In this document: piece by piece, positions 3,001 to 56,925 of the stretch
How the letters are laid out: every line of letters starts with the position of its first letter
Position numbering within the stretch: position 1 is the first letter of the stretch
Source of the DNA: Schmidtea polychroa
Lineage: Eukaryota
Direction of reading: 5' to 3'
Assembly: GCA_044892525.1 (NCBI GenBank)
Contig: CM097887.1
Coordinates: 23,126,001 to 23,190,000, forward strand
Length of the DNA: 64,000 bases
The notes under the pieces: generated by a model
Seen by the model: the letters and a program-made list of their open reading frames with translations, nothing else
What the model was told of the DNA's origin: nothing
Database searches by the model: none
Position numbers and translations under genes: made by a program

Positions 3001-4629
3001 ATTCTCTGCATTCCACACTCTTTCCCATGGGGTTCGTCTGCAGGATCTGGTACTTAGTTTCGTGATTTTTCCTTGTAGTTCCTTTTCTTTTAACCATTGT
3101 TGGTGGATTTCAACTATTTCTGTAGATTTTTGATATAACGTTTTCATCCGGTCTCGTATTTCTTTGTGATATGTTACATCTCTTGTTCGAAATTCATCCA
3201 TTGGTACTATCCTGATTATCTGATGATTGTCCCACATACCCATTTCGCTTAACGAGGTGTCGTCCTCCGCTCGTAATATTATTTTATCGTACATCATGAC
3301 TACATCATCTACCATACCATCACTACTTTCGCTACGTACCTTTTCCGTTATCTCTTGGTTTATCTTTGATACCAAGTCATCCACTGTACTCTGATTGCTC
3401 ATTTTTATTCGTCGTTTCTCTTCGTTCGGTAACCATATGGTTATTTCTAACTTCTGTGGTTGGGTCTCCTTTAACCTTCCATATTTGTGAATCAAATTTA
3501 TGGTTCTCCAATCACTCATTCGGAGCATTTCTGTATCTCGCAACCGGCTCATTAGTTCGTACATGGCTGGGGCTCGTCTGGTGATGAGTAAATCCCAGTT
3601 GTCTTCCACTTGTTCTTGAACTTGTTTGATCAGCTTGTCCAGGTTTCGTCTCAGAGTACATTGCTTTATTTGTTCTAATTTCAATTTGATATTAAAATCA
3701 TATTCCGCCTTGGCATCTTTAGCCCAATCGTAAAGGTTGGCTGGTTGTTTTTCTTTGTGCAACTTCAATATTTGCGTTTCTCCTGGCCATATTAGTGCGT
3801 CTACTAAGTGCATATCTGGTTTGATCTGTTCACCTTGGTATTGATACAGATATTCTTTCTTTCTCGAACTTCCCAAATGTTCTCGTATCCAATCGAAAAG
3901 TTCGTCGGTGACTGTATTTTTTATCCACATTCTTTCAAGTCCTCTACTCGTTCCGATTTTTATTACACACCGCGTGGTATCGGCCTGCTTCATTTTTTCC
4001 ATATACTTTTTTATAATTGATTTTTCCTCGTTTGGTATTAGATCTTTCTCGTTTCTTTCCAATTTCATCACTTTTTGTACGAATCGTCTGAATGGTATTA
4101 TATCGATGAACTCTTGGTTCCTCACTACTACTGGGAGTATTTCAGCTACTTGTTTTATCGCTTCCTCCCTCTCTTTTCTCAACTTTATTTCGATATCCCC
4201 GTCTTCACTTCCGCTGGTTGTCTCGCTTTCGCCTTCTTCCTCTTTGATTTCCCCTTTTGGAGGTTCGCTCATTTCATTTAGCTGTAGTATTTCTCCACCC
4301 AAACTGCTCACATAGTCTTCATCTGATGACGACGTACTTTTTATCCTTTTCATCATGTTAATGTGCAAATTTCTCATCCTTGGTACTCGCTTTAGTTTCT
4401 TTCTTTCAAATATCGTTGTTTCTTTTGATTCTAATTCTTGTAGCATTTGGTGGTTTAGTTGACTGGTTTGTTCCTTGCTCTTGTTATTTTCATCTTCTGT
4501 CTCGGTTTTCGCTTTATTATGTTCTTTTTCGATTTTATCTTTTATCTTTTTCCAGAATATTTTCTGAATTCTCTGGTTTCCTTTTAAAATCGTGGTTGAA
4601 TTCTCTGTTTTCATTTCCGTTGTTGTCTT
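1..4629 (-). CDS. pol: Pol-type polyprotein, 1543 codons open to window edge: acidic/coiled region, ubiquitin-like domains, RT C-terminal part only, RNase H, integrase, ankyrin motif
   Basis: Manual translation found no stop from 4629 to 1 (not in the ORF track because it has no stop in the window). Motifs: LKLKPSKC..FLGHIV, FLGLCGYYRKFI, LATDASG (RNase H), YHDGRLGGH..CLTC, SMDVVGP, LTDQGTNF, YHPQTNGMTERFN, GPY, DHYGDTPLH. Confidence 0.92.
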
Positions 4630-5923
4630 TTACTAACTTCATCATATTTATTCGCAATGCTTGTTCTTGTCGTTGTTGGTTGCGTTCTTGTTTTATCCTC
4701 TCTTCCTCGGCCTGTAGTCTTTGCCATTCTTGTACATGTTGATGCACTTCATAATTGTTGAGATTTTCGGTACTCCTCATCATACGTATATTCTGGGTTT
4801 GTTGTGGTGCTGATTCTTGTCTTGGTCTCATCATTTGTTGCATCATCTGTTTCATCTGCGAAATTTCCTGCATAACGTTCATTTGTTTTCCTTCGTTAGG
4901 GTTACTTTGTCGTTGCGGATTCGCCATATAATTATTATTTCGCGGTGGTGGTCGTTGTTGTTGGCCCCTTTCTCGGCAATCTCTGGAGATGTGACCTGGC
5001 TGACTACAGTTAAAACAACCTCTCAATTGGCATACATTTTCGGTATGTCCACGCCGTCCGCAACGATTACAATTTGAATTTCTATAACAATCTCTGTCCC
5101 AGTGTCCTGGTTTACCGCATGTTCGGCATTGCTTGTTATCGTTCAAATTTCGTCGATTATTAAAATTGTTCTCATTATTCAGGTTGTTGCGATTACCATT
5201 ATTCCCATTTGATCGTCCTTGTGGTGGTTTGAAAATTTGATGCGCTCCTGGTATAAATTGATTCATTTTCGGTTCTTGATTGTTGTTATCTCCGTTATCC
5301 GCTTTCGCTATTGCTGTCGCTATCCTCCCATCCTCTTGCATAATATTCACTTGAGCTGGAAGGTGGAGCTCGCATCTTGTAGCCCAATCTATGGCTTCCT
5401 CTAATGTTTTGCACATTTGACAACCTACTGAGGCTCTTACTTCTTCTCGGCGTAATCCCTCTATGAAATAACCGATCAGATTTTCCTCGGGTAATTTTCC
5501 ATTCATTGCTTTCTTCGCTAATCTCCGCAATTCACTGGCATACAATGTTATCGATTCGTTTGCTCTTTGTTTCCTATTTGCTAGTTCGCCCAACGCCTGG
5601 TTGATTGGCTTACTGGCTCCGAAGGTTTTCTTCAGGAATGTTTTGATATCTTCCCACTTTTCTAATTTCGTATCTCTCTCTTTAGCTTCTAAATATACTT
5701 CTAATGCGCTATCGCACAAAAACAACGGCATCCTTTTGCTAATTGCTTCGGGTGTCCATCCACACACTGTGATATACACTTCAAAATTAGTTATAAATGT
5801 TGCTAACTTGTTTGCATTTCCGTTGAACGGTTCTCCTCGGAACTTTTCTTTATACTCATCGGTTTTTACGGCATTCGTCATGATTGGTGTTCTAGATTCG
5901 TCTGTTTCTTTTAAATTATCCAA
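4535..5923 (-). CDS. gag: Gag (capsid-like region plus three CX2CX4HX4C knuckles and N/Q-rich linker); frame open upstream to 6219
   Basis: CRTCGKPGHWDRDC, CNRCGRRGHTENVC and CFNCSQPGHISRDC; retrotransposon gag-like RKQRANESITLYASELRRLA; overlaps the pol frame (+1) at 4535-4629. Confidence 0.92.
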   Translation of the reverse strand: MDNLKETDESRTPIMTNAVKTDEYKEKFRGEPFNGNANKLATFITNFEVYITVCGWTPEAISKRMPLFLCDSALEVYLEAKERDTKLEKWEDIKTFLKKTFGASKPINQALGELANRKQRANESITLYASELRRLAKKAMNGKLPEENLIGYFIEGLRREEVRASVGCQMCKTLEEAIDWATRCELHLPAQVNIMQEDGRIATAIAKADNGDNNNQEPKMNQFIPGAHQIFKPPQGRSNGNNGNRNNLNNENNFNNRRNLNDNKQCRTCGKPGHWDRDCYRNSNCNRCGRRGHTENVCQLRGCFNCSQPGHISRDCRERGQQQRPPPRNNNYMANPQRQSNPNEGKQMNVMQEISQMKQMMQQMMRPRQESAPQQTQNIRMMRSTENLNNYEVHQHVQEWQRLQAEEERIKQERNQQRQEQALRINMMKLVKDNNGNENREFNHDFKRKPENSENILEKDKR

Positions 5924-8034: not shown

Positions 8035-8510
8035 TTAATAAACCATATGGGTTTCTTTTATCCCATTTTTATATATTGTACATCGCTTCAGATCTTTCAC
8101 GCACTCTTCACAATGACTGAGGTGTCCACAAGGTAAGAATAGTGTGCGTATAGGGCGAAGATTGCAAGACAGACAGGTTCGCAATTTGGTGAGTTTCTCT
8201 TGTATCTTTTGTTCGATTGCCTCTGATATTGTATGTAGTTGATCTTTTATTCGCTCGTATTCTAGATTTAGGGCCGGGTTTTTAGTCGTTTTAGGTACCA
8301 TTGATATACTGTTTCGTGATTTATCTTTTCATCTGAGTGGCTTAAACCTGCGGCCAATAACACGTGATTAGGTACGACTGGTGTATGTCCGATTGCTTGG
8401 AGTAAAATGCTGTTGATTCGCTTTCTTTTTTGTATGAGTGTTTTAATAGGGTCGTTTTCTATATTAATGAAATTAATTAATTGTTGCATCTGTTCTGCGA
8501 ATTCCGTCAT
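8035..8510 (-). pseudogene. IAP-type RING finger protein, frameshifted (about 158 aa if repaired)
   Basis: ORFs 8268-8510 and 8035-8301 join by restoring one A in the A-run near 8282. CLSC-x11-CGH-x3-CEEC-x6-CTIY matches IAP RING spacing with the last Cys changed to Tyr; C-terminal aromatic residue present. Confidence 0.8.
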
Positions 8511-9377
8511 GTCTATTGAGAAAAGGAAAAAAAAATTTTTTTTAATAATATACAGCTAATTAATGGTTATTTCATCAAACATTTTCTTTTAATTCGTTAT
8601 AATTTATTTTATTTTTATCCTATTTCCCGATTATTTACTTTATTTATATCTTTAATTCTATTATTTTCTAATCGTAATTTCTAATAGGATTCGATAGGCA
8701 TTAGTCAATTTGCATTCGCCCACTAATTGACATCGATAATCCCGGTGAATTCACATTATTCGACAGAAATTCCATATTACATCCCGGCTGAGCCCCCAAA
8801 AATTATGCTGGGGTAGTGCTTGGTTGACTCTGCTCAATCTACATCCTTGTCTAGGGGGTGCGTGTCCATATCATTACGCTACATACGCCCGTGTCAACCC
8901 GGAGCAGGACCCCGCACAACTTGCCCTCCAACATAGCACCCGCGAATTGCTTCACGTTGGAAATGTGCTATGCCGGCGAGACTCCAGTAAGCAGGTGAGC
9001 CCCTACCTTAGGACTACTCCTTACTGAGGCCTCGACTTCCCTTTTCTGACGGCCGATGGAAGGACTTACGTCTGTTTACCTCATCAGATTCTCTCTCTAC
9101 CCTGACCCATTATTCGGCACAAAATTGACCACTGCCTCTCGAACTCAAAATTTACTCTCGCTTTGCGAACACTACTCTGAACCTTTACCACAGCTAGTTA
9201 GATTTAAACAACAACAAAAATTTAACCAAAAATTTCTTTATTTTATTATCATGATACATTAGATAATTATACACTACATAACAAGTACACTTGGTGGAGA
9301 ATAGATTAAGAAGAAAAGGAGTCATGATAGTATATTTGTCCATTCGCACCCTGCACGGTTGTATTGTGTTGCGGCCC

Positions 9378-10121: not shown

Positions 10122-11986
10122 TTTTGATAACTGTAACAAAGAAACAATGAGAATAAGAATTAAGATCGGCGATTTCTACTAAACTAGTATGGACACAATC
10201 ATTGGTTGATTTTCGTAAAATTAAGTAAAAGGAAAAAAAAATAAATAAATGATATAGTTTCGTTAGAAATAGTGTTAATTGCATTCAGTGAATTTTTAGA
10301 TGTCCATTTAGGGTGTAGGAGAAATTAACATTTGAATAATACTCTGCCAAAAATTTATGGTTATACTTAAAATATCCATTACCTACTGTTATCTGAGATT
10401 TTCAAATATTTACGTGAAAAATGACTCGCGAATGTATTGACATAATGGACATTAGATTTACAGTTTACCATAGAAATGGTTTAGGAAGAATCAGGAATGT
10501 TTGCATGATTGAATAATTAATGTTCATTTTTGCACATAGCTTTTCGACTACAGATATTTATTTTTGAAAAACGTAAAACAAAATTCTCCAGTGCCGCGTG
10601 AACGATCCTTAAATTAATGGCCCCAAATTGTAACTCATATTTGAATATTAAATTCAGAAAACCCGTTTAATCAACGTGCTACTATTAGATATTTAATAAG
10701 TCGCGTATGATCAGATTTCTATCCCCACCCTAAAAATCAATTTATTTATTTTTCATTATGGAGTCTACTGGTGCAATCAACCTATAAAATTTAGTCGATT
10801 ATTAACAGTCATCCGACGACGCATGAATCACTCGTAGAAATCATTAGCCACATGAATCGGAAAGATACGTATCGATTGGAGATAATTATGTCATGTGCGT
10901 GTGCCTCAGTTTTTGTTCTCACCGTCATTAGCGGGCTGGGAAAAGGATGCATGCGGCATATGTCAATGTGTATTTATATGTGGCAATGCGTGTGATTTGC
11001 CTTGTCTGCTTTCTTACTATCTATGTCAACGGGTTGCAGCTGATCGTCTCACACTGCGAGTTGGAATTATTTTAGTTATTCAATATGTTCTCTATGAGTA
11101 ATTCTCACCGCGCATGAACGTTGGAATTTTATTCTCGCGATGTGCAGTTCCCTCCGTTTTTCAACTTGGATGTTGTGATTTCGGGGAATATTCCCAGCAG
11201 TTCATTCAACAGAAATCTCTCTTATTTTGGTCGAAAGAGTCATTTATAGAAAGAACCTCGCGTTGCCGCTATCGTGGATTTTCAGGAGCAATGGAAAAAT
11301 TACAGCGTTTGTTGACAATTATATTTATACTAAAAATCTTTTGTTGAATAAATCTTCATTTATGCTCTCTATATTCTGATTTCGCATTTGATGAACATAT
11401 TTGTACGCGGTAAGTTTTGATAGAAAAATATTTTTCTGCTAAAAGATAGAATGTCAGTTGATGTCAATATACGATTTCTGATGTCAGTGTGATGTTTACT
11501 AAGAGTTTGTAGCCACCTCAGTCATTTTCAATTCAGATTTGCTCTACTTTTCAATATTGGAATATATTCCTCTGTACTTTAAACTCGTGCTTGCAGCATT
11601 ATATTTCCCTCAGCGACGGACCCGTGAGGAAGCCCCCACATTCCGGCCCACGTCAGCTGCGTGATTGAAGAGATCCACACCCGCCGGCTGAGCTCCCGAA
11701 GGCTCCTCATACCATGGCGTGGGTCTCCTCAACTCCACGTTTCTCAAAACAAATAATTTTAGCATAATCAATACGTTCGATGACAAAACATAACATAAAT
11801 ATTTATATATCATTAACCTTTAAATTAATTTACGAACTATAAAATCATTAAAAATTGAAATCGAATGGAGAAGTTTTTATTCAAAGGTTAGGTTAATATA
11901 ATAGAAATATTTAATCCTTCAAAAAACAAATTTCATAACAGCAATACATCCTTACTTCATTATTTGAAAAATTCTGTAGTTCCAAA

Positions 11987-13640: not shown

Positions 13641-13894
13641 ATTACGAGAACCAAACCAGAATCAGTCTACAGAAACGGTAATCGATTTAGAATCGTCAAG
13701 TTCATCAAATTAGAATTAAGAAAAAGAAAGTTACAAACTGTTTCTGTGTAGGGTTTAACACACGAATATATTCGTCGAATACTATTCGAATAATCTCTAC
13801 AGTAGATGGATTGGGCACCGCTAGCACAGTACCCCCCGCCCCCCGGTCGTAAAAAATTAAAAAAAATTTTTTTAAAGGTCAAATTTTAAACAAA

Positions 13895-14270
13895 GACATA
13901 TGACTCATCAAGGTCATTGAAACAAAGACCATGACTCATCCAATGACTCATCAAATTTCTCGAGGTCATTTAAACAAAGACCATGACTCATCAAGGTCAT
14001 ATGACTCATCAAAATTTTCAAGGTCATTTAAACAAAGACCATGACTCACCCAAGGTCATATGGCTCATACTATGACTCATCAGGTCATATGATTCATACT
14101 ATGACTCATCAAGGTCATTTTCAAGGTCATATGCCTCATCAAGGTAAAAAATTCCCAAGGTCATTTTCAAGGTCACCTGAGTCATCCTATGACTCATCAA
14201 GGTCATTTTCAAGGTCGCATGACTCATCCAAGGTCATATGAGTCGTCGCGATGAGTCATCAAGGTTATAT
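13895..14270. repeat. Subterminal array of ATGACTCAT and (TC)AAGGTCA motifs
   Basis: At least ten ATGACTCA/TGAGTCA motifs interleaved with at least ten AGGTCA motifs, often as ATGACTCATCAAGGTCAT; TTCCCGCCAA (E2F-like) at 14326. Confidence 0.9.
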
Positions 14271-14427
14271 CATTATTTTTAAAAAATATTATTATTTTTA
14301 AAAAATATTATTATTTTTTTCAAAGTTCCCGCCAACGAAAATTATTTATCGATAGCTCATTTTAAAGCTCAATCCAAGACCTTTCGAATGAGCCATATAT
14401 CTTGTTATTACGATTATTCTTTCTAAA

Positions 14428-14500
<73 letters not shown>
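14428..14500. repeat. (ATT)n microsatellite
   Basis: Direct inspection. Confidence 0.95.
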
Positions 14501-14501
<1 letters not shown>

Positions 14502-14656
14502 AAAAAAATGTTTTTTAGTTTTGTTGAGTTTTTAATTAAATAAATATTAACGTCAGAGTTTTGATGTTCTGAAAAACAATTATTTATGTTGCGGCCCGCC
14601 GGCTCATAATACTAGTCTAATGCGGCCCGCAGGCCAGTTTGAGTTTGAAACCCCTG
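14500..14656. mobile_element. hAT (Charlie/Buster-like) terminal fragment inserted into the Polinton arm
   Basis: Minus strand reads CAGGGGTTTCAAACTCAAACTGGCCTGCGGGCCGCA from 14656, a typical hAT terminus with GCGGCCCG repeats. Confidence 0.65.
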
Positions 14657-14910
14657 ATCTATAGGTTCATCTATAGGTTCATAGATTTCCTCATCAATTT
14701 CTTGAGTTTCTTCCTCATCATCAAATCCTGTATCTTGACTCTCAACTATCCAGCCGATATTTAAGGCATTTGTAATAGATAATATGTCCTCAATTTTCAC
14801 ACCAGCTATTTCTGCTAACTTTTCCAACAAAAAGTTGATTACAAATTCTAAATAATAAATAATTCGGTAATTAATTAATCATGTTAACCTTTTTCTGCAG
14901 TCATTTTCAT
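14657..14910 (-). pseudogene. Polinton small acidic-tail gene, 41-nt intron (14848-14888), 3' end cut by the hAT insertion
   Basis: MKMTAEK-E|FVINFLLEKLAEIAGVKIEDILSITNALNIGWIVESQDTGFDDEEETQ after GT-AG splicing; TATAAA about 27-32 nt upstream of the ATG. Confidence 0.5.
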
Positions 14911-15036
14911 CACTTTAAAACTATATTATAAGTTTGTTTATAGATTTTCTTTGTTAAATTTGCATGTCATTTGCATTTATGTTGCAATTAATAAAGAGAA
15001 AAACAAATATGACTAATACATTTATTAAATAGAACA

Positions 15037-15429
15037 TTAAAATATTTGTGAAAGTCTAGCAGACATAATTTTCCAAATAGGAGAATATACATCATTATTA
15101 TCAACTTTATATCCCTGGATTGCAATTGTTATATACCAATTTTCATTTTCTTTGAAACTGATTTCATCAAAAGCATCATAAAATCTTGCATATCTATTGT
15201 TGAACCATGCATGTTGATTACACGATAGATTCGAATCTAACCGTTTAAAAACATCATCAATAGTTTTGACATCAATCATTGAAAGCGTGCCGGATAAGAA
15301 TTGAAATTTAGTTGAAATTAGCTTGACTGGTGCAACCAATTTCATATTGATTTCTTCTTTCAAAAAATACATTTTATAGTTGTGGAACATTTCTTTAGGT
15401 TTTTCGGTGCATGAAATTTTCTTGGTCAT
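15037..15429 (-). CDS. Polinton-associated protein (130 aa), possibly an OB-fold ssDNA-binding protein
   Basis: Intact ATG-stop ORF; C-terminal WYITIAIQGYKVDNNDVYSPIWKI resembles viral T7 gp2.5/DUF2738-like SSB strands (by eye only). Confidence 0.6.
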   Translation of the reverse strand: MTKKISCTEKPKEMFHNYKMYFLKEEINMKLVAPVKLISTKFQFLSGTLSMIDVKTIDDVFKRLDSNLSCNQHAWFNNRYARFYDAFDEISFKENENWYITIAIQGYKVDNNDVYSPIWKIMSARLSQIF

Positions 15430-15462
15430 AGTGAATAATGATTAAATTGAAATGTTACAGGG

Positions 15463-15540
15463 TTTTTATACCTTTGACTCATGCCTATCAACCAATCAGA
15501 TTATAGCATGTCTTTGTTTAAATTTGCATGTCATTTGCAT
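15463..15540 (-). promoter_or_regulatory. Pol II-type promoter: two octamers, CCAAT, AP-1, TATA
   Basis: ATTTGCAT at 15522 and 15533, CCAAT at 15493, TGACTCA at 15475, TATAAAAA at 15470-15463, ATG at 15429. Confidence 0.65.
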
Positions 15541-15751
15541 TAATGCTGCATTTATGTTCTATTAATGTGACATATTATTATTAATGTTTTATTATTAATG
15601 TTTTATTATTATTACTATTTATATTACTATTTATATTATTTCTATTATTATTATTTCTATTTATATTATTATTACTATTTATATTATTACTATTATTACT
15701 ATTTATTACTATTTCAAATCTAAAAACGCAATAGAAACAAAAATACATTTA

Positions 15752-16162
15752 TTAATATTTATCAACAATCCGGGAGTAGTGAAACCTTCTCAGAGTTTTC
15801 ACTAACTCCCATTCGACATATCGCCGATATCGATCGGCACAACATGAACATCCGAACATATTTTGATACTCCGGCTCCATTTGTTTCATGGTTCTATTAA
15901 TCTTGATATCCCATAGGAATTGATGGAATACCTCCATGGTTCTAATTTGAGTGGAATAGAATATGAGATCCGGAATGATTTCTGGTTCTCTATCCTTGAT
16001 TATTTCTGCAATTTGAGGATAATAATATTTTATCCTATTCAGCATTACTTCTAAATATTTTTCTAAAATAATAAATATAAAAAATGTGAAAATAAAAATT
16101 TTAAATTTACCATAGTCGTCAATATCTTTCATTAGATTTGCTGCGCTTGGTATTTTGTACAT
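15752..16162 (-). CDS. Polinton orphan gene with a CxCC motif and a 48-nt in-frame intron (16063-16110)
   Basis: MYKIPSAANLMKDIDDY-E|KYLEVML...FGCSCCADRYRRY. The low-complexity GKFKIFIFTFFIFIIL stretch is exactly a GTAAAT...TTTTAG intron. Confidence 0.6.
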   Translation of the reverse strand: MYKIPSAANLMKDIDDYGKFKIFIFTFFIFIILEKYLEVMLNRIKYYYPQIAEIIKDREPEIIPDLIFYSTQIRTMEVFHQFLWDIKINRTMKQMEPEYQNMFGCSCCADRYRRYVEWELVKTLRRFHYSRIVDKY

Positions 16163-16221
16163 TTTGTTGAATAAATGAATCCTAAACAAAAAACCGTTTG
16201 TTTAAATCAATCAATAACCAA

Positions 16222-16656
16222 TTAGAAATCGACCAATGAAATTATCTCATTTCGAACATTGTCAACAAATTCTCTATACTCCAAATTTCTCAACCCCAAC
16301 ATGACAACCTTTCCACTAGCAAACACGTTGACACATATAAGGTTATATTTTAATAGTCTTATTGCCGGAAACAATTCCGGTTCAAACATACAATCACATT
16401 TTTTCGACATGTTATATAGATTGATACTATGTCCCATATCCATAGTAACGGTAATTGATTGGATTATAATATTATTTATTCGATATTGCAATTTATTATC
16501 CAAAGGTTTCTTACATCCCATGATTCGGCATTTACCAGTCTTGAAAAATATTATCGGATATTTCCCGCTTCTATCGATAATTTGCTGGGGTTTCCCTGAT
16601 GGGAACCTCATATTCGATACATCAAAATTTCCTCGATAATTTATATTTGCTAACAT
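16222..16656 (-). CDS. Minimal TATA-binding-protein (TBP)-like protein, 144 aa, two repeats
   Basis: Repeat 2, IQSITVTMDMGHSINL..MFEPELFPAIRLL..VNVFASGKVVMLG, aligns to TBP IQNMVGSCDV..IRL..YEPELFPGLIYRM..LLIFVSGKVVLTG. Repeat 1 retains NI..IIFFKTGKCRIMG. Confidence 0.88.
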   Translation of the reverse strand: MLANINYRGNFDVSNMRFPSGKPQQIIDRSGKYPIIFFKTGKCRIMGCKKPLDNKLQYRINNIIIQSITVTMDMGHSINLYNMSKKCDCMFEPELFPAIRLLKYNLICVNVFASGKVVMLGLRNLEYREFVDNVRNEIISLVDF

Positions 16657-16759
16657 TATTAAATCATTTATGAAAGTTAGTCTTTATATACAAATTGAGC
16701 ACGAGTTCAATAAATCATCGAATATAAACAAATACACATATATTTTTAAAATTTTTGAA
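16657..16759. promoter_or_regulatory. Bidirectional promoter between the TBP-like gene and the ATPase
   Basis: TATATAAA on the minus strand about 28 nt upstream of the TBP-like ATG; TATAAA at 16723 about 32-37 nt upstream of the ATPase ATG (16760). The background is AT-rich. Confidence 0.45.
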
Positions 16760-16892
16760 ATGGAATTAAGAAATGATGCAGTATACCAAATCGTTGGTCC
16801 GAGTGGTAGTGGAAAAACATTATTTGTTTGCAAATTACTAAAATCAAATTTATTCAAAACAAAATTCAACAGGATTTATTGGCATAGGGGTG
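16760..16892 (+). pseudogene. A32/FtsK-like packaging ATPase N-terminus, truncated
   Basis: MELRNDAVYQIVGPSGSGKTLFVCKLL..FNRIYW: Walker A plus the downstream F-x-x-I-Y-W strand of Polinton ATPases; sequence switches to piggyBac after about 16892. Confidence 0.75.
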
Positions 16893-18601
16893 TAGATTTT
16901 GTAGTTCAGAAGAAGAGGACATTACTGACAAGAGTACAGAGGCAGAAGATAACTGTAGTTCCAGTTATCAAGACGAAATTGCACCTGTTCAAATACCAGA
17001 CCCACTCGACCTACCATGGAGTTTTTCTTTAAGGTCTCATCCAGCGTTTCTTTTTTAAGGCGATTCTGGTATAAAGCTTGACAATTTAAACAAAGATAAC
17101 CCTATCCAACTGTTTGAATGTTTTTTTTTACTGACGAGCTTATAAATAAAATCGTTGTTGAAACAAATCGTTATGTGGAGCAGTATCTGAACTATAATAA
17201 AGACAATATAAAAAATCAATTTCGAGTAAAAGAATGGACAGCAACTATTATTATTCAGGGAATCTGCATAAATCCAGAGTGTAGATTATATTTTACGAAA
17301 CGAGAGAGCATCGAAACACCATTGCTTTGTAAACAACAAGGAGTTTGATGCTAATTCACCAAACCGAAGATTATTCAAAATTCAGCCGTTTATGTTCCTA
17401 ATCAAAAGATTTCCATTGACGAATCATTGATTGGGTGTAAAGGCCGGCTCGCCTGGAAACAATATATTCCCTCAATAAGAAAGAGATTTGGAATGAAAAT
17501 ATTTGTATTGTGCGAAAGTGAAACTGGTTATGTATACAATTTTTTTATTTATACTGGCTCGAGTACCCAGCATGGGAATTCCATTTACCTGATGAACCTG
17601 TATTTGGTAGAGTCGTATTGGAGTTATCACATTCGCTTCTGAACAAGGGTTATTGTTTATACGTTGATAATTATTATACCAGTCCCGATCTTACTGATAA
17701 ATTAATAAAAAGACGAATAGATTTTGTTGGAACGATGAGAGTAAATAGAAAGGGAATTCCAACTGAAATAAAATCTAAAAAATTACAAAAAGGAAATCAT
17801 ATTGCAATGTACAGAAGAAAACAAATGATAATGAAATGGAAGGATAAAAAAGATATAGTAAAATATAGTAATAGCACGATTCATGACGATAGTAAAAAAT
17901 TAGTAAAAGGAAAAAGCGGGTTCAAGGTGGAAAAACCGACTGTAGTGTTAGATTATAACTCAAGAATGGGAGACGTAGACTTGGCCGATAATATGCTCCA
18001 TTTTTACACATCGGCAAGATGTCGCCTAAAAAAATATTATATGAAAATATATAGGCATTTTTTAAATGTGGCTTCTCTTAATTCATTTATTTTATACAAA
18101 AAGCTAGGAGGACGGAAAAACCGCCTCAACTTTCTCTTAGATTTTTGGGAACAAATCGTAGAACAATATGCCACAGAAAAGGAGGTTTGTGGAAGAAGAC
18201 CAAAAATACCGAGACCATTGCGATTCCTTGAACGACATTTCATTGGTCTAATACCCCAAACTACGAAAGAAAACCCCACAAAACGTTGTGTAGTATGTTC
18301 CGAAAATGGGAAAAGGAAAGAGAGCAGGTATTGATGTGCTGATTGTTATACTGGACTTTGTCCAGCAACATGCTTCAAAATTTATGATACGAGAGACGAA
18401 AGAAATTGACCTAAATTGACGAAATATGTTAAAAATATATCATAAATATTACTTTTGTTAACATATTATCTTAATAAATATCATCGAATAAGATATTTTA
18501 TTTTTGTAACACTATGCCCAAGATGTATATATACGCTAGCGGATAACAAAACTCGCCGCTGAGGAGCGCATTTCGTTTGACGAAATAAACCACTTAAGAG
18601 G
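16893..18601 (+). mobile_element. piggyBac-family element, 5'-truncated, transposase with stops and frameshifts
   Basis: FFTDELINKIVVETNRY, SIDESLIGCKGR, LYVDNYYTS, VGTMRVNRKG, YNSRMGDVDLAD, C-terminal RCVVC..KESRY; right end ...AAGAGG followed by TTAA at 18602. Confidence 0.9.
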
Positions 18602-19928: not shown

Positions 19929-20895
19929 TTTCCTCCCTGGCACCTTACAAATTTTATTATAAAAAAAAATCTTGTTGGCACAGACCAAAAATTGTCTAAG
20001 AGAATTCGTTTTATTAAACACACTCACATTTACGAATAGTCAGTTAAAGCACTTTCTATTTAAATAAATGATTTTCCGGTCTGTTGGAATTTATAAACTG
20101 ATTTTTGTACAATTTTTTATTACTGCTATTATTATTATCAAGAGTAGGACAAAATTCTGTGGGTTTCGGTATTTGATTTTCCAGGTTGACTGATAGGTCC
20201 ATATCCTCGAATTCGCTGGCAAAAATGAACTGGTTGTTTAATTCCGGATTAAATCTCGGTGACTGAACGCTGGAAATGTAGACGGAGATTTTAAACTTAA
20301 ATTTATCAATAAATGAAAACAATAAACTTTTAACCACGAGCGCTATATTGACGATTTTTTTCAGAACTGCAAGTGACGTGTATACCACGTCGATAGTATT
20401 TGTCGCAAAAACAAAAACAAAAGTAGACTATTGATTAATAAAATTTATTGTTGTTGTGAATAATTATTTATATTCGTGTAAATCTTTTATGTAAGACCCT
20501 GCCCTCGCGCTAAGCACTGGTCAAACCTCTGAGCTCGCTGACGCGGTGAGGCGTCGATGCCTTACGATATTTTATATAGTAGAGCGCGGCTCAGCTACCG
20601 AAAATTAAATCATAGCGCAAGTGGTTAAAATAAATTTGTACATTTAGCACTCAAAATTGCAAATAATATCCAAATTAAATATATTATTGAATCAATATAT
20701 TGATAAAATTTTTTGATGATTTTATAAACATTTATTGAATTAAATATAAAATATTGAATNNNNNNNNNNNNNNNNNNNNNNNNNNNNNNNNNNNNNNNNN
20801 NNNNNNNNNNNNNNNNNNNNNNNNNNNNNNNNNNNNNNNNNNNNNNNNNNNNNNNNNNNNNNNNNNNNNNNNNNNNNNNNNNNNNNNNNNNNNNN

Positions 20896-20912
20896 AAATA
20901 AATAATAATAAT

Positions 20913-20990
<78 letters not shown>
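20896..20990. repeat. (AAT)n microsatellite next to an assembly gap (N at 20760-20895)
   Basis: Direct inspection. Confidence 0.95.
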
Positions 20991-20992
<2 letters not shown>

Positions 20993-21299
20993 CTGCCATG
21001 TGACCCCTCTGTGATCCAGACGTTAATAACTTTTATTTAAAACTTCTAAGCATAAAGTTGTATACTACTATGTACCTTCTAAAATCGAGAATGTGAGTGC
21101 ATATTATCTTTGACTAAGTATTTGGTTTGAATTCTAATGTGAAAAGACTTCCATTTTAGCATGTGATTTAATATTTTTAAACATATCCAAAATGAAATTG
21201 TGAAATTTTTACAAAATGACATTTATCAACTAAAATAGAATATTTTCCAGCAAAATGCCCATATTAATATTAATCCACCTATTTAATCCATGATAAAAA

Positions 21300-25199: not shown

Positions 25200-26000
25200 G
25201 ACTTGTTAATTACTTCATCGAAATCAATTCCTTTCGCCAAATCACTTTCAATTGATAATATTACAAGATGAGAAAGCCTTGACTATCCCGTGGTAGATTG
25301 CAAATAGTTCTTTATAAACTTTAGCTTTAAAAAACTCCTCTCATATGAAGCCACAGACACACAGATCGTAAGAAATAATTGTAGGCTTATTGAGAGATGT
25401 GGGAGAGATTCTAGGAAGTCCCATTCAGCTAGTAATTTTAAAACGTAAAGCACTGACAAGTCTTTAGTTTCTCCATGATCAATCTCTGCTACCTTCGGGT
25501 ACCTCCTCAGTCTTGGTATTTCTAATAAAAGCTCTTCCTCTGATAACTCATCATAAAAAGTGGTCAATTTTGAAATGGACACCAGTAACTCTTCCTCAAT
25601 GGCAGTTATCAAACTCTTGGCTTGAACAACCTCAAACATGGCTGCTACTTCCTTGAAGGCTATTGATCTGATATGGAGTTTCTTGTTTTCTTATTACAGG
25701 GTTAGTCTAACATCTCACCTGTCATCCTCTTCTTGAACGTGGGTCTGCTCTCTATTGAAATTCCATATTGGCCTGATTTTAAAATCGCTTGTTTAATTGC
25801 CAACTCCACAATATGATTATACTGATAAAACGTATATAAAACGTCTTAGCGTCTCTAGCTTTATCGCCACCTTGTCAAGAGTTACGTCCTTAGTCTGAAG
25901 GTACAGCTATGAAAGATTAACTTGTGTCATTGAAGATCGTTGATAATTCAATTCAGTCATTTTAACTTCGACAATGTTTGTAATCATGAGACACATATAA
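25200..26000 (-). pseudogene. hAT transposase C-terminal relic (dimerisation domain)
   Basis: LQLFLTICVSVASYERSFLKLKFIKNYLQST matches the hAT consensus SxASxERSFSxLKxIKxxLRST. Confidence 0.8.

Positions 26001-27103: not shown

Positions 27104-56925
<29,822 letters not shown>

Follow-up and report, generated by a model that had tools for sequence, protein, structure and literature searches.

A predicted minimal TATA-binding protein gene of Polinton/Maverick-type elements and its relic copy in Schmidtea polychroa

Can a mobile element of the Polinton/Maverick type carry a basal transcription factor of its own and, if so, which genes would that factor serve? The question is raised by a 64,000-nt stretch of the Schmidtea polychroa genome (assembly GCA_044892525.1, contig CM097887.1, positions 23,126,001–23,190,000, forward strand; hereafter “the window”, with positions counted from its first base). 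An initial annotation, made from the sequence alone, had proposed that a Polinton/Maverick-like element encodes a minimal TATA-binding protein (TBP) here, at positions 16222–16656. To our knowledge, no basal transcription factor belongs to the described core set of Polintons, and essentially nothing has been established about how Polinton/Maverick expression is controlled. We describe here the predicted protein and its family, the elements that carry related genes, a promoter word that accompanies certain of their genes, and the condition of the copy in the window.

The open reading frame (ORF) has exactly the extent that had been given: it lies on the minus strand at 16222–16656, starts with ATG, and runs through 144 codons without interruption. 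Its product matched the TBP family PF00352 with a score of 50.0 bits (cut-off 22.9; E=2.6e-13), with the match confined to residues 63–124, that is, to one repeat. When sequences in the PDB were searched, every match was a TBP, the best at 9e-9 with the single protein and at 5e-20 with the family profile. An AlphaFold2 model built on a 47-sequence family alignment had a mean predicted local distance difference test score (pLDDT) of 95 and a predicted template modelling score (pTM) of 0.83, and its comparison with the PDB by Foldseek gave 44 matches at E≤0.001, all of them TBPs (best E approximately 1e-8). These structural alignments extended over about 170 columns of the 177–190-residue TBP core, with template modelling scores of 0.68–0.78 when normalised to the query. 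In the model, residues 61–141 form a complete repeat (S1′, H1′, S2′–S5′, and H2′), whereas residues 1–60 form four strands and no helix; therefore, the N-terminal half appears to be a reduced repeat, and the protein is short because the N-lobe helices H1 and H2 are gone. The same picture emerged from profile alignments: in HMMER, family positions 36–148 aligned with residues 59–185 of an archaeal TBP, with the S4–S5 hairpin of repeat 1 matched and helix H2 of repeat 1 appearing as a deletion, and hhalign against canonical TBP covered residues 3–125 with a probability of 98.9%. As had been noticed at the outset, there is no N-terminal extension, and the protein begins at strand S1. The statement that both TBP repeats are present holds for the fold, as judged by Foldseek, but it goes too far for the N-terminal half, where neither helix is present; Pfam recognises a single repeat. 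The ORF product is thus predicted to be a genuine, structurally minimal TBP, with a full or nearly full saddle sheet minus the helices of its N-terminal lobe.

The residues expected to touch DNA are strongly conserved across the family. The initial annotation had recognised phenylalanines in at least three of the four DNA-intercalating positions, and three of them are near-invariant and align with their counterparts in solved TBPs: F96 and F112 of the second repeat, each present in 47 of the 47 aligned members, and F38 of the first repeat, present in 46. On strand S1, N4, I5, and N6 are kept in 45, 47, and 46 members, respectively; on strand S1′, Q66, S67, and T69 are conserved, with a near-invariant serine where solved TBPs carry the central asparagine. 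In TBP–TFIIB–DNA complexes, TFIIB is contacted through the C-terminal stirrup of TBP. The corresponding residues E92, P93, E94, L95, F96, and P97 are retained in 46, 45, 46, 40, 47, and 39 of the 47 proteins, and the resulting segment, EPELFP, is identical to the aligned segment of a canonical cellular TBP (P0186) found in the same protein search. The TFIIB-contacting stirrup is therefore, as far as the alignment can tell, conserved in the short-TBP family. A stirrup that is kept while the N-lobe helices are missing would also be expected of a decoy or shut-off factor, which had been suggested at the outset and which would bind host TFIIB (or TFIIA/NC2), or block host TATA boxes, and so dampen host transcription, for example that of antiviral or apoptotic genes. 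We consider such a role unlikely: the three phenylalanines, the N4–I5–N6 triplet, and the Q66, S67, and T69 positions would all contact DNA, and their strong conservation would be needless in a pure protein decoy.

How widespread is this form of TBP? The first protein search retrieved 56 clusters (at 90% identity) of proteins of 100–190 amino acids, most of them 144–160 amino acids long, which shared 36–97% identity with the window protein and all contained PF00352. An exhaustive profile search (with 50% clustering) gave 60 representatives at E≤1e-30 and approximately 120 full-length single-stretch matches, with canonical two-repeat TBPs lower down in the same list. Overall, the family comprises at least 100 clusters of proteins of 145–160 amino acids. 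In the alignment of 47 members, 11 columns are invariant and 19 more are at least 90% conserved; PF00352 was matched by all 47, and all 47 have the same short architecture. Conservation across the family also excludes a chance ORF. Three cysteines stand out in this alignment (A1), namely C43 (47/47), C48 (43/47), and C108 (47/47), of which only C108 has a cysteine counterpart in the aligned canonical TBP. The window protein itself shares approximately 30% identity with P0186 over 115 residues and 20–24% with solved TBPs. The reading of the gene as a highly diverged, possibly captured TBP agrees with these values, and a recent retrocopy of host TBP or of the TBP-related factor TRF, one of the outcomes that had been named as refuting the initial proposal, was ruled out by this low identity to canonical TBP and by the short-form relatives linked to Polinton genes. 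A wider version of the same idea, in which a domesticated copy has been kept for a cellular function after the death of the element, is very improbable for the same family-level reasons: the closest relatives (36–97% identity) are all of the short viral form, and those that were checked are linked to Polinton genes.

The elements that carry these genes have the content of Polintons. We collected 67 loci with a short-TBP gene (numbered with the prefix L), 54 of them from a pattern scan of JGI metagenomes, and at least one homologue of a Polinton core gene lies beside the TBP gene in 43 of the 67; most of the others are contigs shorter than 3 kb. On the 22-kb contig L001, the TBP gene is accompanied by an A32-like ATPase, an rve integrase, a 410-amino-acid capsid-like protein, and a DNA_pol_B_2 polymerase. 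Loci L002–L005 (JGI) encode a polymerase, an ATPase, an integrase with rve domain and chromodomain, a 420-amino-acid protein, and an adenain-like protease, and the TBP gene comes last; L013 again has the full set. L007 and L008 share the same core and carry, in the terminal arm, genes for a Bcl-2 homologue, TBP, and a RING-finger protein. Linkage of TBP to PolB and integrase was seen in L001, L002, L013, L022, and L046, and the Pfam scores of the core proteins in the relatives lie above curated cut-offs (DNA_pol_B_2, 117.7 bits; rve, 46.4; Pox_A32, 31.1; Peptidase_C5, 30.3). The linkage that the initial annotation had asked for in other copies is thus found, and the TBP gene is, judging from these gene neighbourhoods, a standing gene of a large Polinton/Maverick (adintovirus-like) clade. 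It occurs in two gene orders, either near the ATPase, as in the window, or after the capsid-like gene and the protease at the other end.

Certain neighbours deserve separate mention. The capsid-like protein (403–427 amino acids) is highly conserved, with a mean column identity of 61%, and had no match in Pfam or among PDB sequences; from its size, position, and conservation, we infer that it may be the capsid protein. In L007, the Bcl-2 homologue (8091–8576) lies directly upstream of TBP and the C3HC4 RING-finger gene (10662–11075) on the same terminal arm. The presence of these animal-type host-manipulation genes suggests that this branch infects animals, and neighbours of this kind would also suit a TBP that acts as a decoy against host transcription. 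The protein-primed PolB of L013 (10726–13179, minus strand) carries, just N-terminal to its polymerase domain, a match to Endonuclease_7 (recombination endonuclease VII) of 27.9 bits (cut-off 23.6). The position of the TBP gene within the elements bears on another alternative, namely that the protein is an architectural bender of A+T-rich DNA at or near the termini that assists either protein-primed initiation or packaging by the ATPase. The distance from the TBP gene to the contig or element end is 0.4–2.7 kb in the window and in L002, L007, L013, and L022, and the gene is often found beside the packaging ATPase. Even so, we hold this role to be quite improbable, since it would leave the conservation of the TFIIB stirrup without a purpose and since the best-fitting site motif, described below, lies elsewhere.

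What does the window itself retain of such an element? Positions 13801–16897 are predicted to be a terminal fragment of about 3.1 kb from a Polinton/Maverick (adintovirus-like) element, the remainder of which is absent from the window. A tblastn comparison of the full 64 kb with the proteins encoded by four relatives of the element gave no match to PolB, integrase, capsid-like protein, or protease anywhere, and the only matches were to the TBP ORF, to a 130-amino-acid ORF, and to the first 46–51 codons of the ATPase (16742–16897). Because the matches are confined to these three genes, the window contains a terminal fragment and not a Polinton with its core set; the designation as a Polinton/Maverick-like element is borne out by the relatives linked to core genes, but not by a complete gene set in place. 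Consistent with this, the metagenome contig L006, which is 92% identical, matches positions 16055–16892 only, and it runs on through ATPase sequence that the window lacks. The A32/FtsK-type packaging ATPase is a 5′ remnant on the plus strand (16760–16897) of 46 codons with a Walker A motif. Its ATG at 16760 is the start common to the relatives, and the remnant is 78% identical to residues 1–46 of the L007 ATPase; its Pox_A32 match is weak (18.5 bits, against a cut-off of 22.8 and 31.1 bits for full-length relatives). It has suffered a single truncation, with the remaining approximately 160 codons absent. Hence the head-to-head orientation of TBP and ATPase that had been described is correct, but only 46 ATPase codons are left. 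Between the two starts lies a divergent TBP/ATPase promoter region of 103 nt (16657–16759).

Which promoters might a TBP of this kind serve? A TATA-like word, TATAAAC, was first noticed when the 60-nt stretches preceding the genes of L001, L002, L007, and L013 were read, where it recurs before many of them. Over 18 non-redundant loci, it occurs at 111 sites, and for 47 of these the next ORF start lies 30–45 nt downstream, whereas random placement would give 3.0±1.7 such sites (maximum, 9 in 1000 trials). In 41 of the 47 sites, the word is followed directly by A, and the second base downstream is A in 34. The word is distributed unevenly among gene classes. It was found within 70 nt upstream of the ATPase in 16 of 18 loci (in 14 of the 16, at 32–37 nt from the ATG), and 7 of 10 capsid-like genes are preceded by it as well (at 39–57 nt). 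Before the ATPase, the capsid-like gene, and small adjacent ORFs, its spacing is by and large fixed at 32–45 nt. Within the same distance, it precedes the integrase in none of 12, TBP in none of 45, the gene for the 130-amino-acid protein in 1 of 14 (at 36 nt), and the protease in 2 of 10 (at 8 and 17 nt). Instead, a plain TATA-type hexamer is located upstream of 22 of the 45 TBP genes, the window copy among them. In the window, the ATPase start codon is preceded at 37 nt by TATAAACA (16723–16730, plus strand), and the TBP start codon is preceded at 34 nt by TATATAAA (16683–16690, minus strand). No paper joining TATAAAC with Polintons, Mavericks, or adintoviruses was found in the literature searched. 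These positions bear on both alternatives introduced above: a TATA-like motif at a fixed position before the genes of the element itself would be a direct target, which speaks against a decoy, and the motif that would best suit a TBP is placed near gene 5′ ends, with constant spacing to the start codons, rather than at the termini where a DNA bender would be expected to act.

We lean towards the view that the element-encoded, virus-type minimal TBP drives the TATAAACA promoters through host TFIIB and RNA polymerase II (Pol II). Contigs of 11–22 kb contain no RNA polymerase gene, and because the elements show none, they would depend on host Pol II for transcription. An ordinary host-type TATA promoter would drive the TBP gene, whose product would bind the TATAAACA boxes in front of the morphogenesis genes and recruit host TFIIB and Pol II via the conserved stirrup. 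In cellular TBP, the N-lobe helices make up much of the regulatory convex surface, and such surfaces are used by TFIID and other regulators; the loss of these helices might detach the element protein from TFIID-type partners and regulators and so make it independent of host control. Furthermore, in solved TBP–DNA complexes, it is the 3′ half of the box that lies beneath the N-terminal repeat. Because of this, the remodelled N-lobe would face the unusual C at position 7 of the box, and it may account for it. The earlier suggestion that the protein redirects Pol II to element promoters is in this way supported indirectly, through the position-fixed TATAAAC(A) upstream of the ATPase and capsid-like genes. 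A fuller scheme, which we offer as a tentative and on the whole doubtful extension, is a two-tier programme, run by a widespread clade of these elements, in which host-type TATA promoters serve a set of genes that includes the minimal TBP; this TBP, freed of most contacts with host regulators by the loss of its N-lobe helices, would in turn, with host TFIIB and Pol II, switch on the genes of the virion module through TATAAACA.

Several observations speak against this proposal, both in general and for the copy in the window. The fourth intercalating phenylalanine is uncertain: F18 is Phe in 41 of the 47 members, and hhalign places the invariant P23 at the canonical column. The link between protein and motif is a correlation, apparent within TBP-carrying elements only; no relatives of either the TBP family or the capsid-like protein were found among IMG/VR viral contigs. 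An element-specific factor is not obviously required, because TATAAA is also a good site for host TBP, and TATAAAC also resembles the core recognised in sites of the forkhead type. The TATAAAC positions might thus be used by a factor of the host. In the window, the system is non-functional: it consists of a 3.1-kb end-piece with a truncated ATPase and a TBP in which a near-invariant proline has been substituted. This residue, proline in 46 of the 47 family members, is leucine (L106) in the window protein. Finally, the TBP ORF is no better conserved than its surroundings, with a divergence from L006 of 2.5%, compared with 3.0% for the adjacent intergenic DNA.

These features also decide how the local copy is to be understood. 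Compared with its closest relative, the window TBP has four residue differences, of which L106 is one, and one in-frame indel. The ratio of non-synonymous to synonymous substitution rates (dN/dS), one of the checks proposed at the outset, is 0.13 relative to L006, a value based on small counts (7 synonymous and 4 non-synonymous, 11 substitutions in all). Both this ratio and the intactness of the ORF, which persists despite the truncated ATPase and at least one other decayed gene in the fragment, would be expected if the host had retained the gene. They can be read differently, however. A 435-nt ORF at approximately 2.5% divergence can remain open by chance, and since the ORF is no better conserved than intergenic DNA, the constraint most likely predates integration. 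The private proline-to-leucine change at a site conserved in 46 of 47 members likewise indicates that the copy is probably a decaying relic and does not suit a domesticated host gene. The local TBP copy is thus most likely a recent relic of a gene that was constrained in its element.

The remainder of the fragment consists of a putative terminus and two further ORFs. A candidate end begins with AGTAG at position 13801, 2.4 kb from the TBP ORF as had been reported, and extends to 14330 (plus strand) with a G+C-rich stretch and subterminal tandem repeats, in arrays at 13908–14270 that have periods of 29–58 nt. Polintons end in inverted repeats that begin 5′-AG and are bordered by a target-site duplication. 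The candidate end starts with AG and bears subterminal repeats, but no inverted copy of it is present in the window to confirm the extent of the element, and the terminus is therefore plausible rather than proven. The only large “inverted repeat” around the fragment is formed by (TTA)n/(TAA)n microsatellites at 14429–14500 and 20901–20994, which were rejected as termini as they are simple repeats; the latter abuts an assembly gap (a run of N) at 20760–20895. All 13 copies of the heptamer TGACTCA in the window lie inside the Polinton fragment, 12 of them in the subterminal repeats at 13901–14258. The remaining copy (15475–15481) lies upstream of the TATA box of the 130-amino-acid ORF, and in the divergent relative L013, six copies are clustered near the TBP-side end (L013:963–1215). 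We take TGACTCA to be an AP-1/bZIP-type word, and its cluster may be a terminal enhancer-like array.

A second TATAAACA word occurs on the minus strand at 14935–14942, with no intact gene after it; the first ATG-initiated minus-strand ORFs downstream consist of a few codons each. The conserved 130-amino-acid ORF (n130; 15037–15429, minus strand) is open and has TATAAAAA 41 nt upstream of its ATG. Homologues of 103–189 amino acids adjoin the TBP gene in at least 17 loci (among them L001:5274–5642, L014, L015, L016, L022, L023, and L028), so that n130 is a frequent neighbour of TBP. In its alignment (A2), D53, F83, W98, G106, P117, and A124 are invariant, no match was found in Pfam or among PDB sequences, and an AlphaFold model from two sequences was unusable (pLDDT 37). 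The n130 protein could be a partner of TBP. Between n130 and TBP lies a 145-codon ORF (n145; 15752–16189, minus strand), which is poorly conserved and possibly damaged: at the protein level, it matches its L006 counterpart by only 59%, its 5′ region has diverged from L006 by 14.7% and by four indels, none of which is a multiple of three, and it had no Pfam match.

On the other side, the ATPase remnant is directly adjoined by a degraded piggyBac-type transposase (16898–18334, plus strand), which is 5′-truncated and split into at least three reading-frame pieces; positions 9–72, 134–185, and 196–349 of the DDE_Tnp_1_7 profile fall in separate ORFs. No transposon end lies between the two coding regions, and both elements were, on this evidence, severed in a single rearrangement or deletion event and not by a simple insertion. 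The wider window is A+T-rich (25–32% G+C from 12 kb onward) and contains abundant remains of eukaryotic transposons, including gag with a zinc knuckle, pogo/Tc5, hAT, and piggyBac; Rfam and tRNA scans of the window gave no matches. Further ORFs at 634–1311, 4535–5923, 25283–25639, and 44832–45548 (all on the minus strand) comprise retrotransposon integrase-like and gag/zinc-knuckle sequences, a hAT dimerisation-domain remnant, and a partial Ras-family match; the integrase-like and gag/zinc-knuckle ORFs fall in a region of strong negative AT skew (1–8 kb). An intact 464-codon ORF for a pogo/Tigger-type transposase (DDE_1 and HTH_Tnp_Tc5) is located at 35074–36468 on the plus strand; even the closest public relatives share just 58% identity with it, and those with a species name belong to assorted invertebrates. 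At 52644–55375, a 21-bp satellite of approximately 129 copies (84% matches), with a strong excess of G over C and of A over T, yields long spurious ORFs in three frames.

How does the element protein compare with TBPs of known systems? With the core of eukaryotic and archaeal TBPs (PF00352), it shares the saddle fold over both lobes, the EPELFP stirrup, both phenylalanines of the second repeat, and an alignable S4–S5 segment of repeat 1, phenylalanine included. It differs in its size (144 amino acids, compared with approximately 180 in two helix-bearing repeats), in the absence of H1 and H2 from the first repeat, and in being encoded by a mobile virus-like element instead of a cellular locus. 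The best viral fold matches (E from 5e-8 to 1e-3) were TBPs of giant viruses, for example those of Heterosigma akashiwo virus, mimivirids, and marseilleviruses and the asfarvirus B263R type, which are 190–560 amino acids long. The giant viruses that bear a TBP encode their own multisubunit RNA polymerase, whereas the Polinton-type contigs are without any polymerase subunit, and the partner of their TBP would have to be host TFIIB together with host Pol II. Among predicted viral structures, the herpesvirus TBP-like late factors BcRF1 and U58 were weak fold matches. In beta- and gammaherpesviruses, which are nuclear DNA viruses with no RNA polymerase of their own, a TBP-fold late factor of the BcRF1/ORF24/UL87 class reads a non-canonical TATA variant in the late promoters of virion genes and brings in host Pol II. 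The resemblance to the element TBP would be one of operation only, with no detectable sequence relationship; the herpesvirus factors have several hundred residues and act in a multi-protein viral complex, and we do not claim membership of their class for the element TBP. A herpesvirus-like feature of the elements may be the gene-class restriction of the motif, which precedes mainly small ORFs, the ATPase, and the capsid-like gene, and never integrase or TBP.

Polintons/Mavericks, whose morphogenesis module comprises jelly-roll capsid proteins, an A32/FtsK-type ATPase, and an adenain-type protease, are seen as forebears or near relatives of numerous eukaryotic double-stranded DNA viruses. With these elements and with adintoviruses, the relatives described here have in common a protein-primed PolB, an rve integrase (in some cases with a chromodomain), an A32-like ATPase, an adenain-like protease, and a capsid-like protein. 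The initial annotation held that no such TBP system had been characterised, which is nearly right, as none has been described in the literature searched; a gene label nonetheless exists. The sole precedent found there for a TBP-like gene in Polinton- or adintovirus-related genomes is the label “TBP” in midsize linear double-stranded DNA (MELD) viruses with an adintovirus-like PolB, given in the legend of Fig. 5 of Starrett et al. 2021 (PMC8502044) and in its preprint. The gene appears there as a label, without architecture, distribution, promoter motif, or function, and it may or may not belong to the same family. The searched literature contained no account of the reduced TBP architecture, of the size or spread of the family, or of the promoter word.

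If the proposed role is correct, Polintons would gain in the short TBP their first assigned basal transcription factor, a small-genome counterpart of the TBP mimic that serves herpesvirus late genes, and virus-encoded TBPs would extend from giant viruses and herpesviruses to elements of 10–20 kb that have no polymerase. A saddle of approximately 145 amino acids would be the smallest natural TBP; it would separate the surfaces for promoter recognition from those for regulation and would amount to a natural experiment on which parts of TBP are dispensable. When invertebrate genomes and soil or wetland metagenomes are annotated, the short-TBP family would also be a useful marker by which to recognise this Polinton clade. 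Together, an element TBP and a gene-class-specific promoter word would provide a concrete, testable model of Polinton gene regulation.

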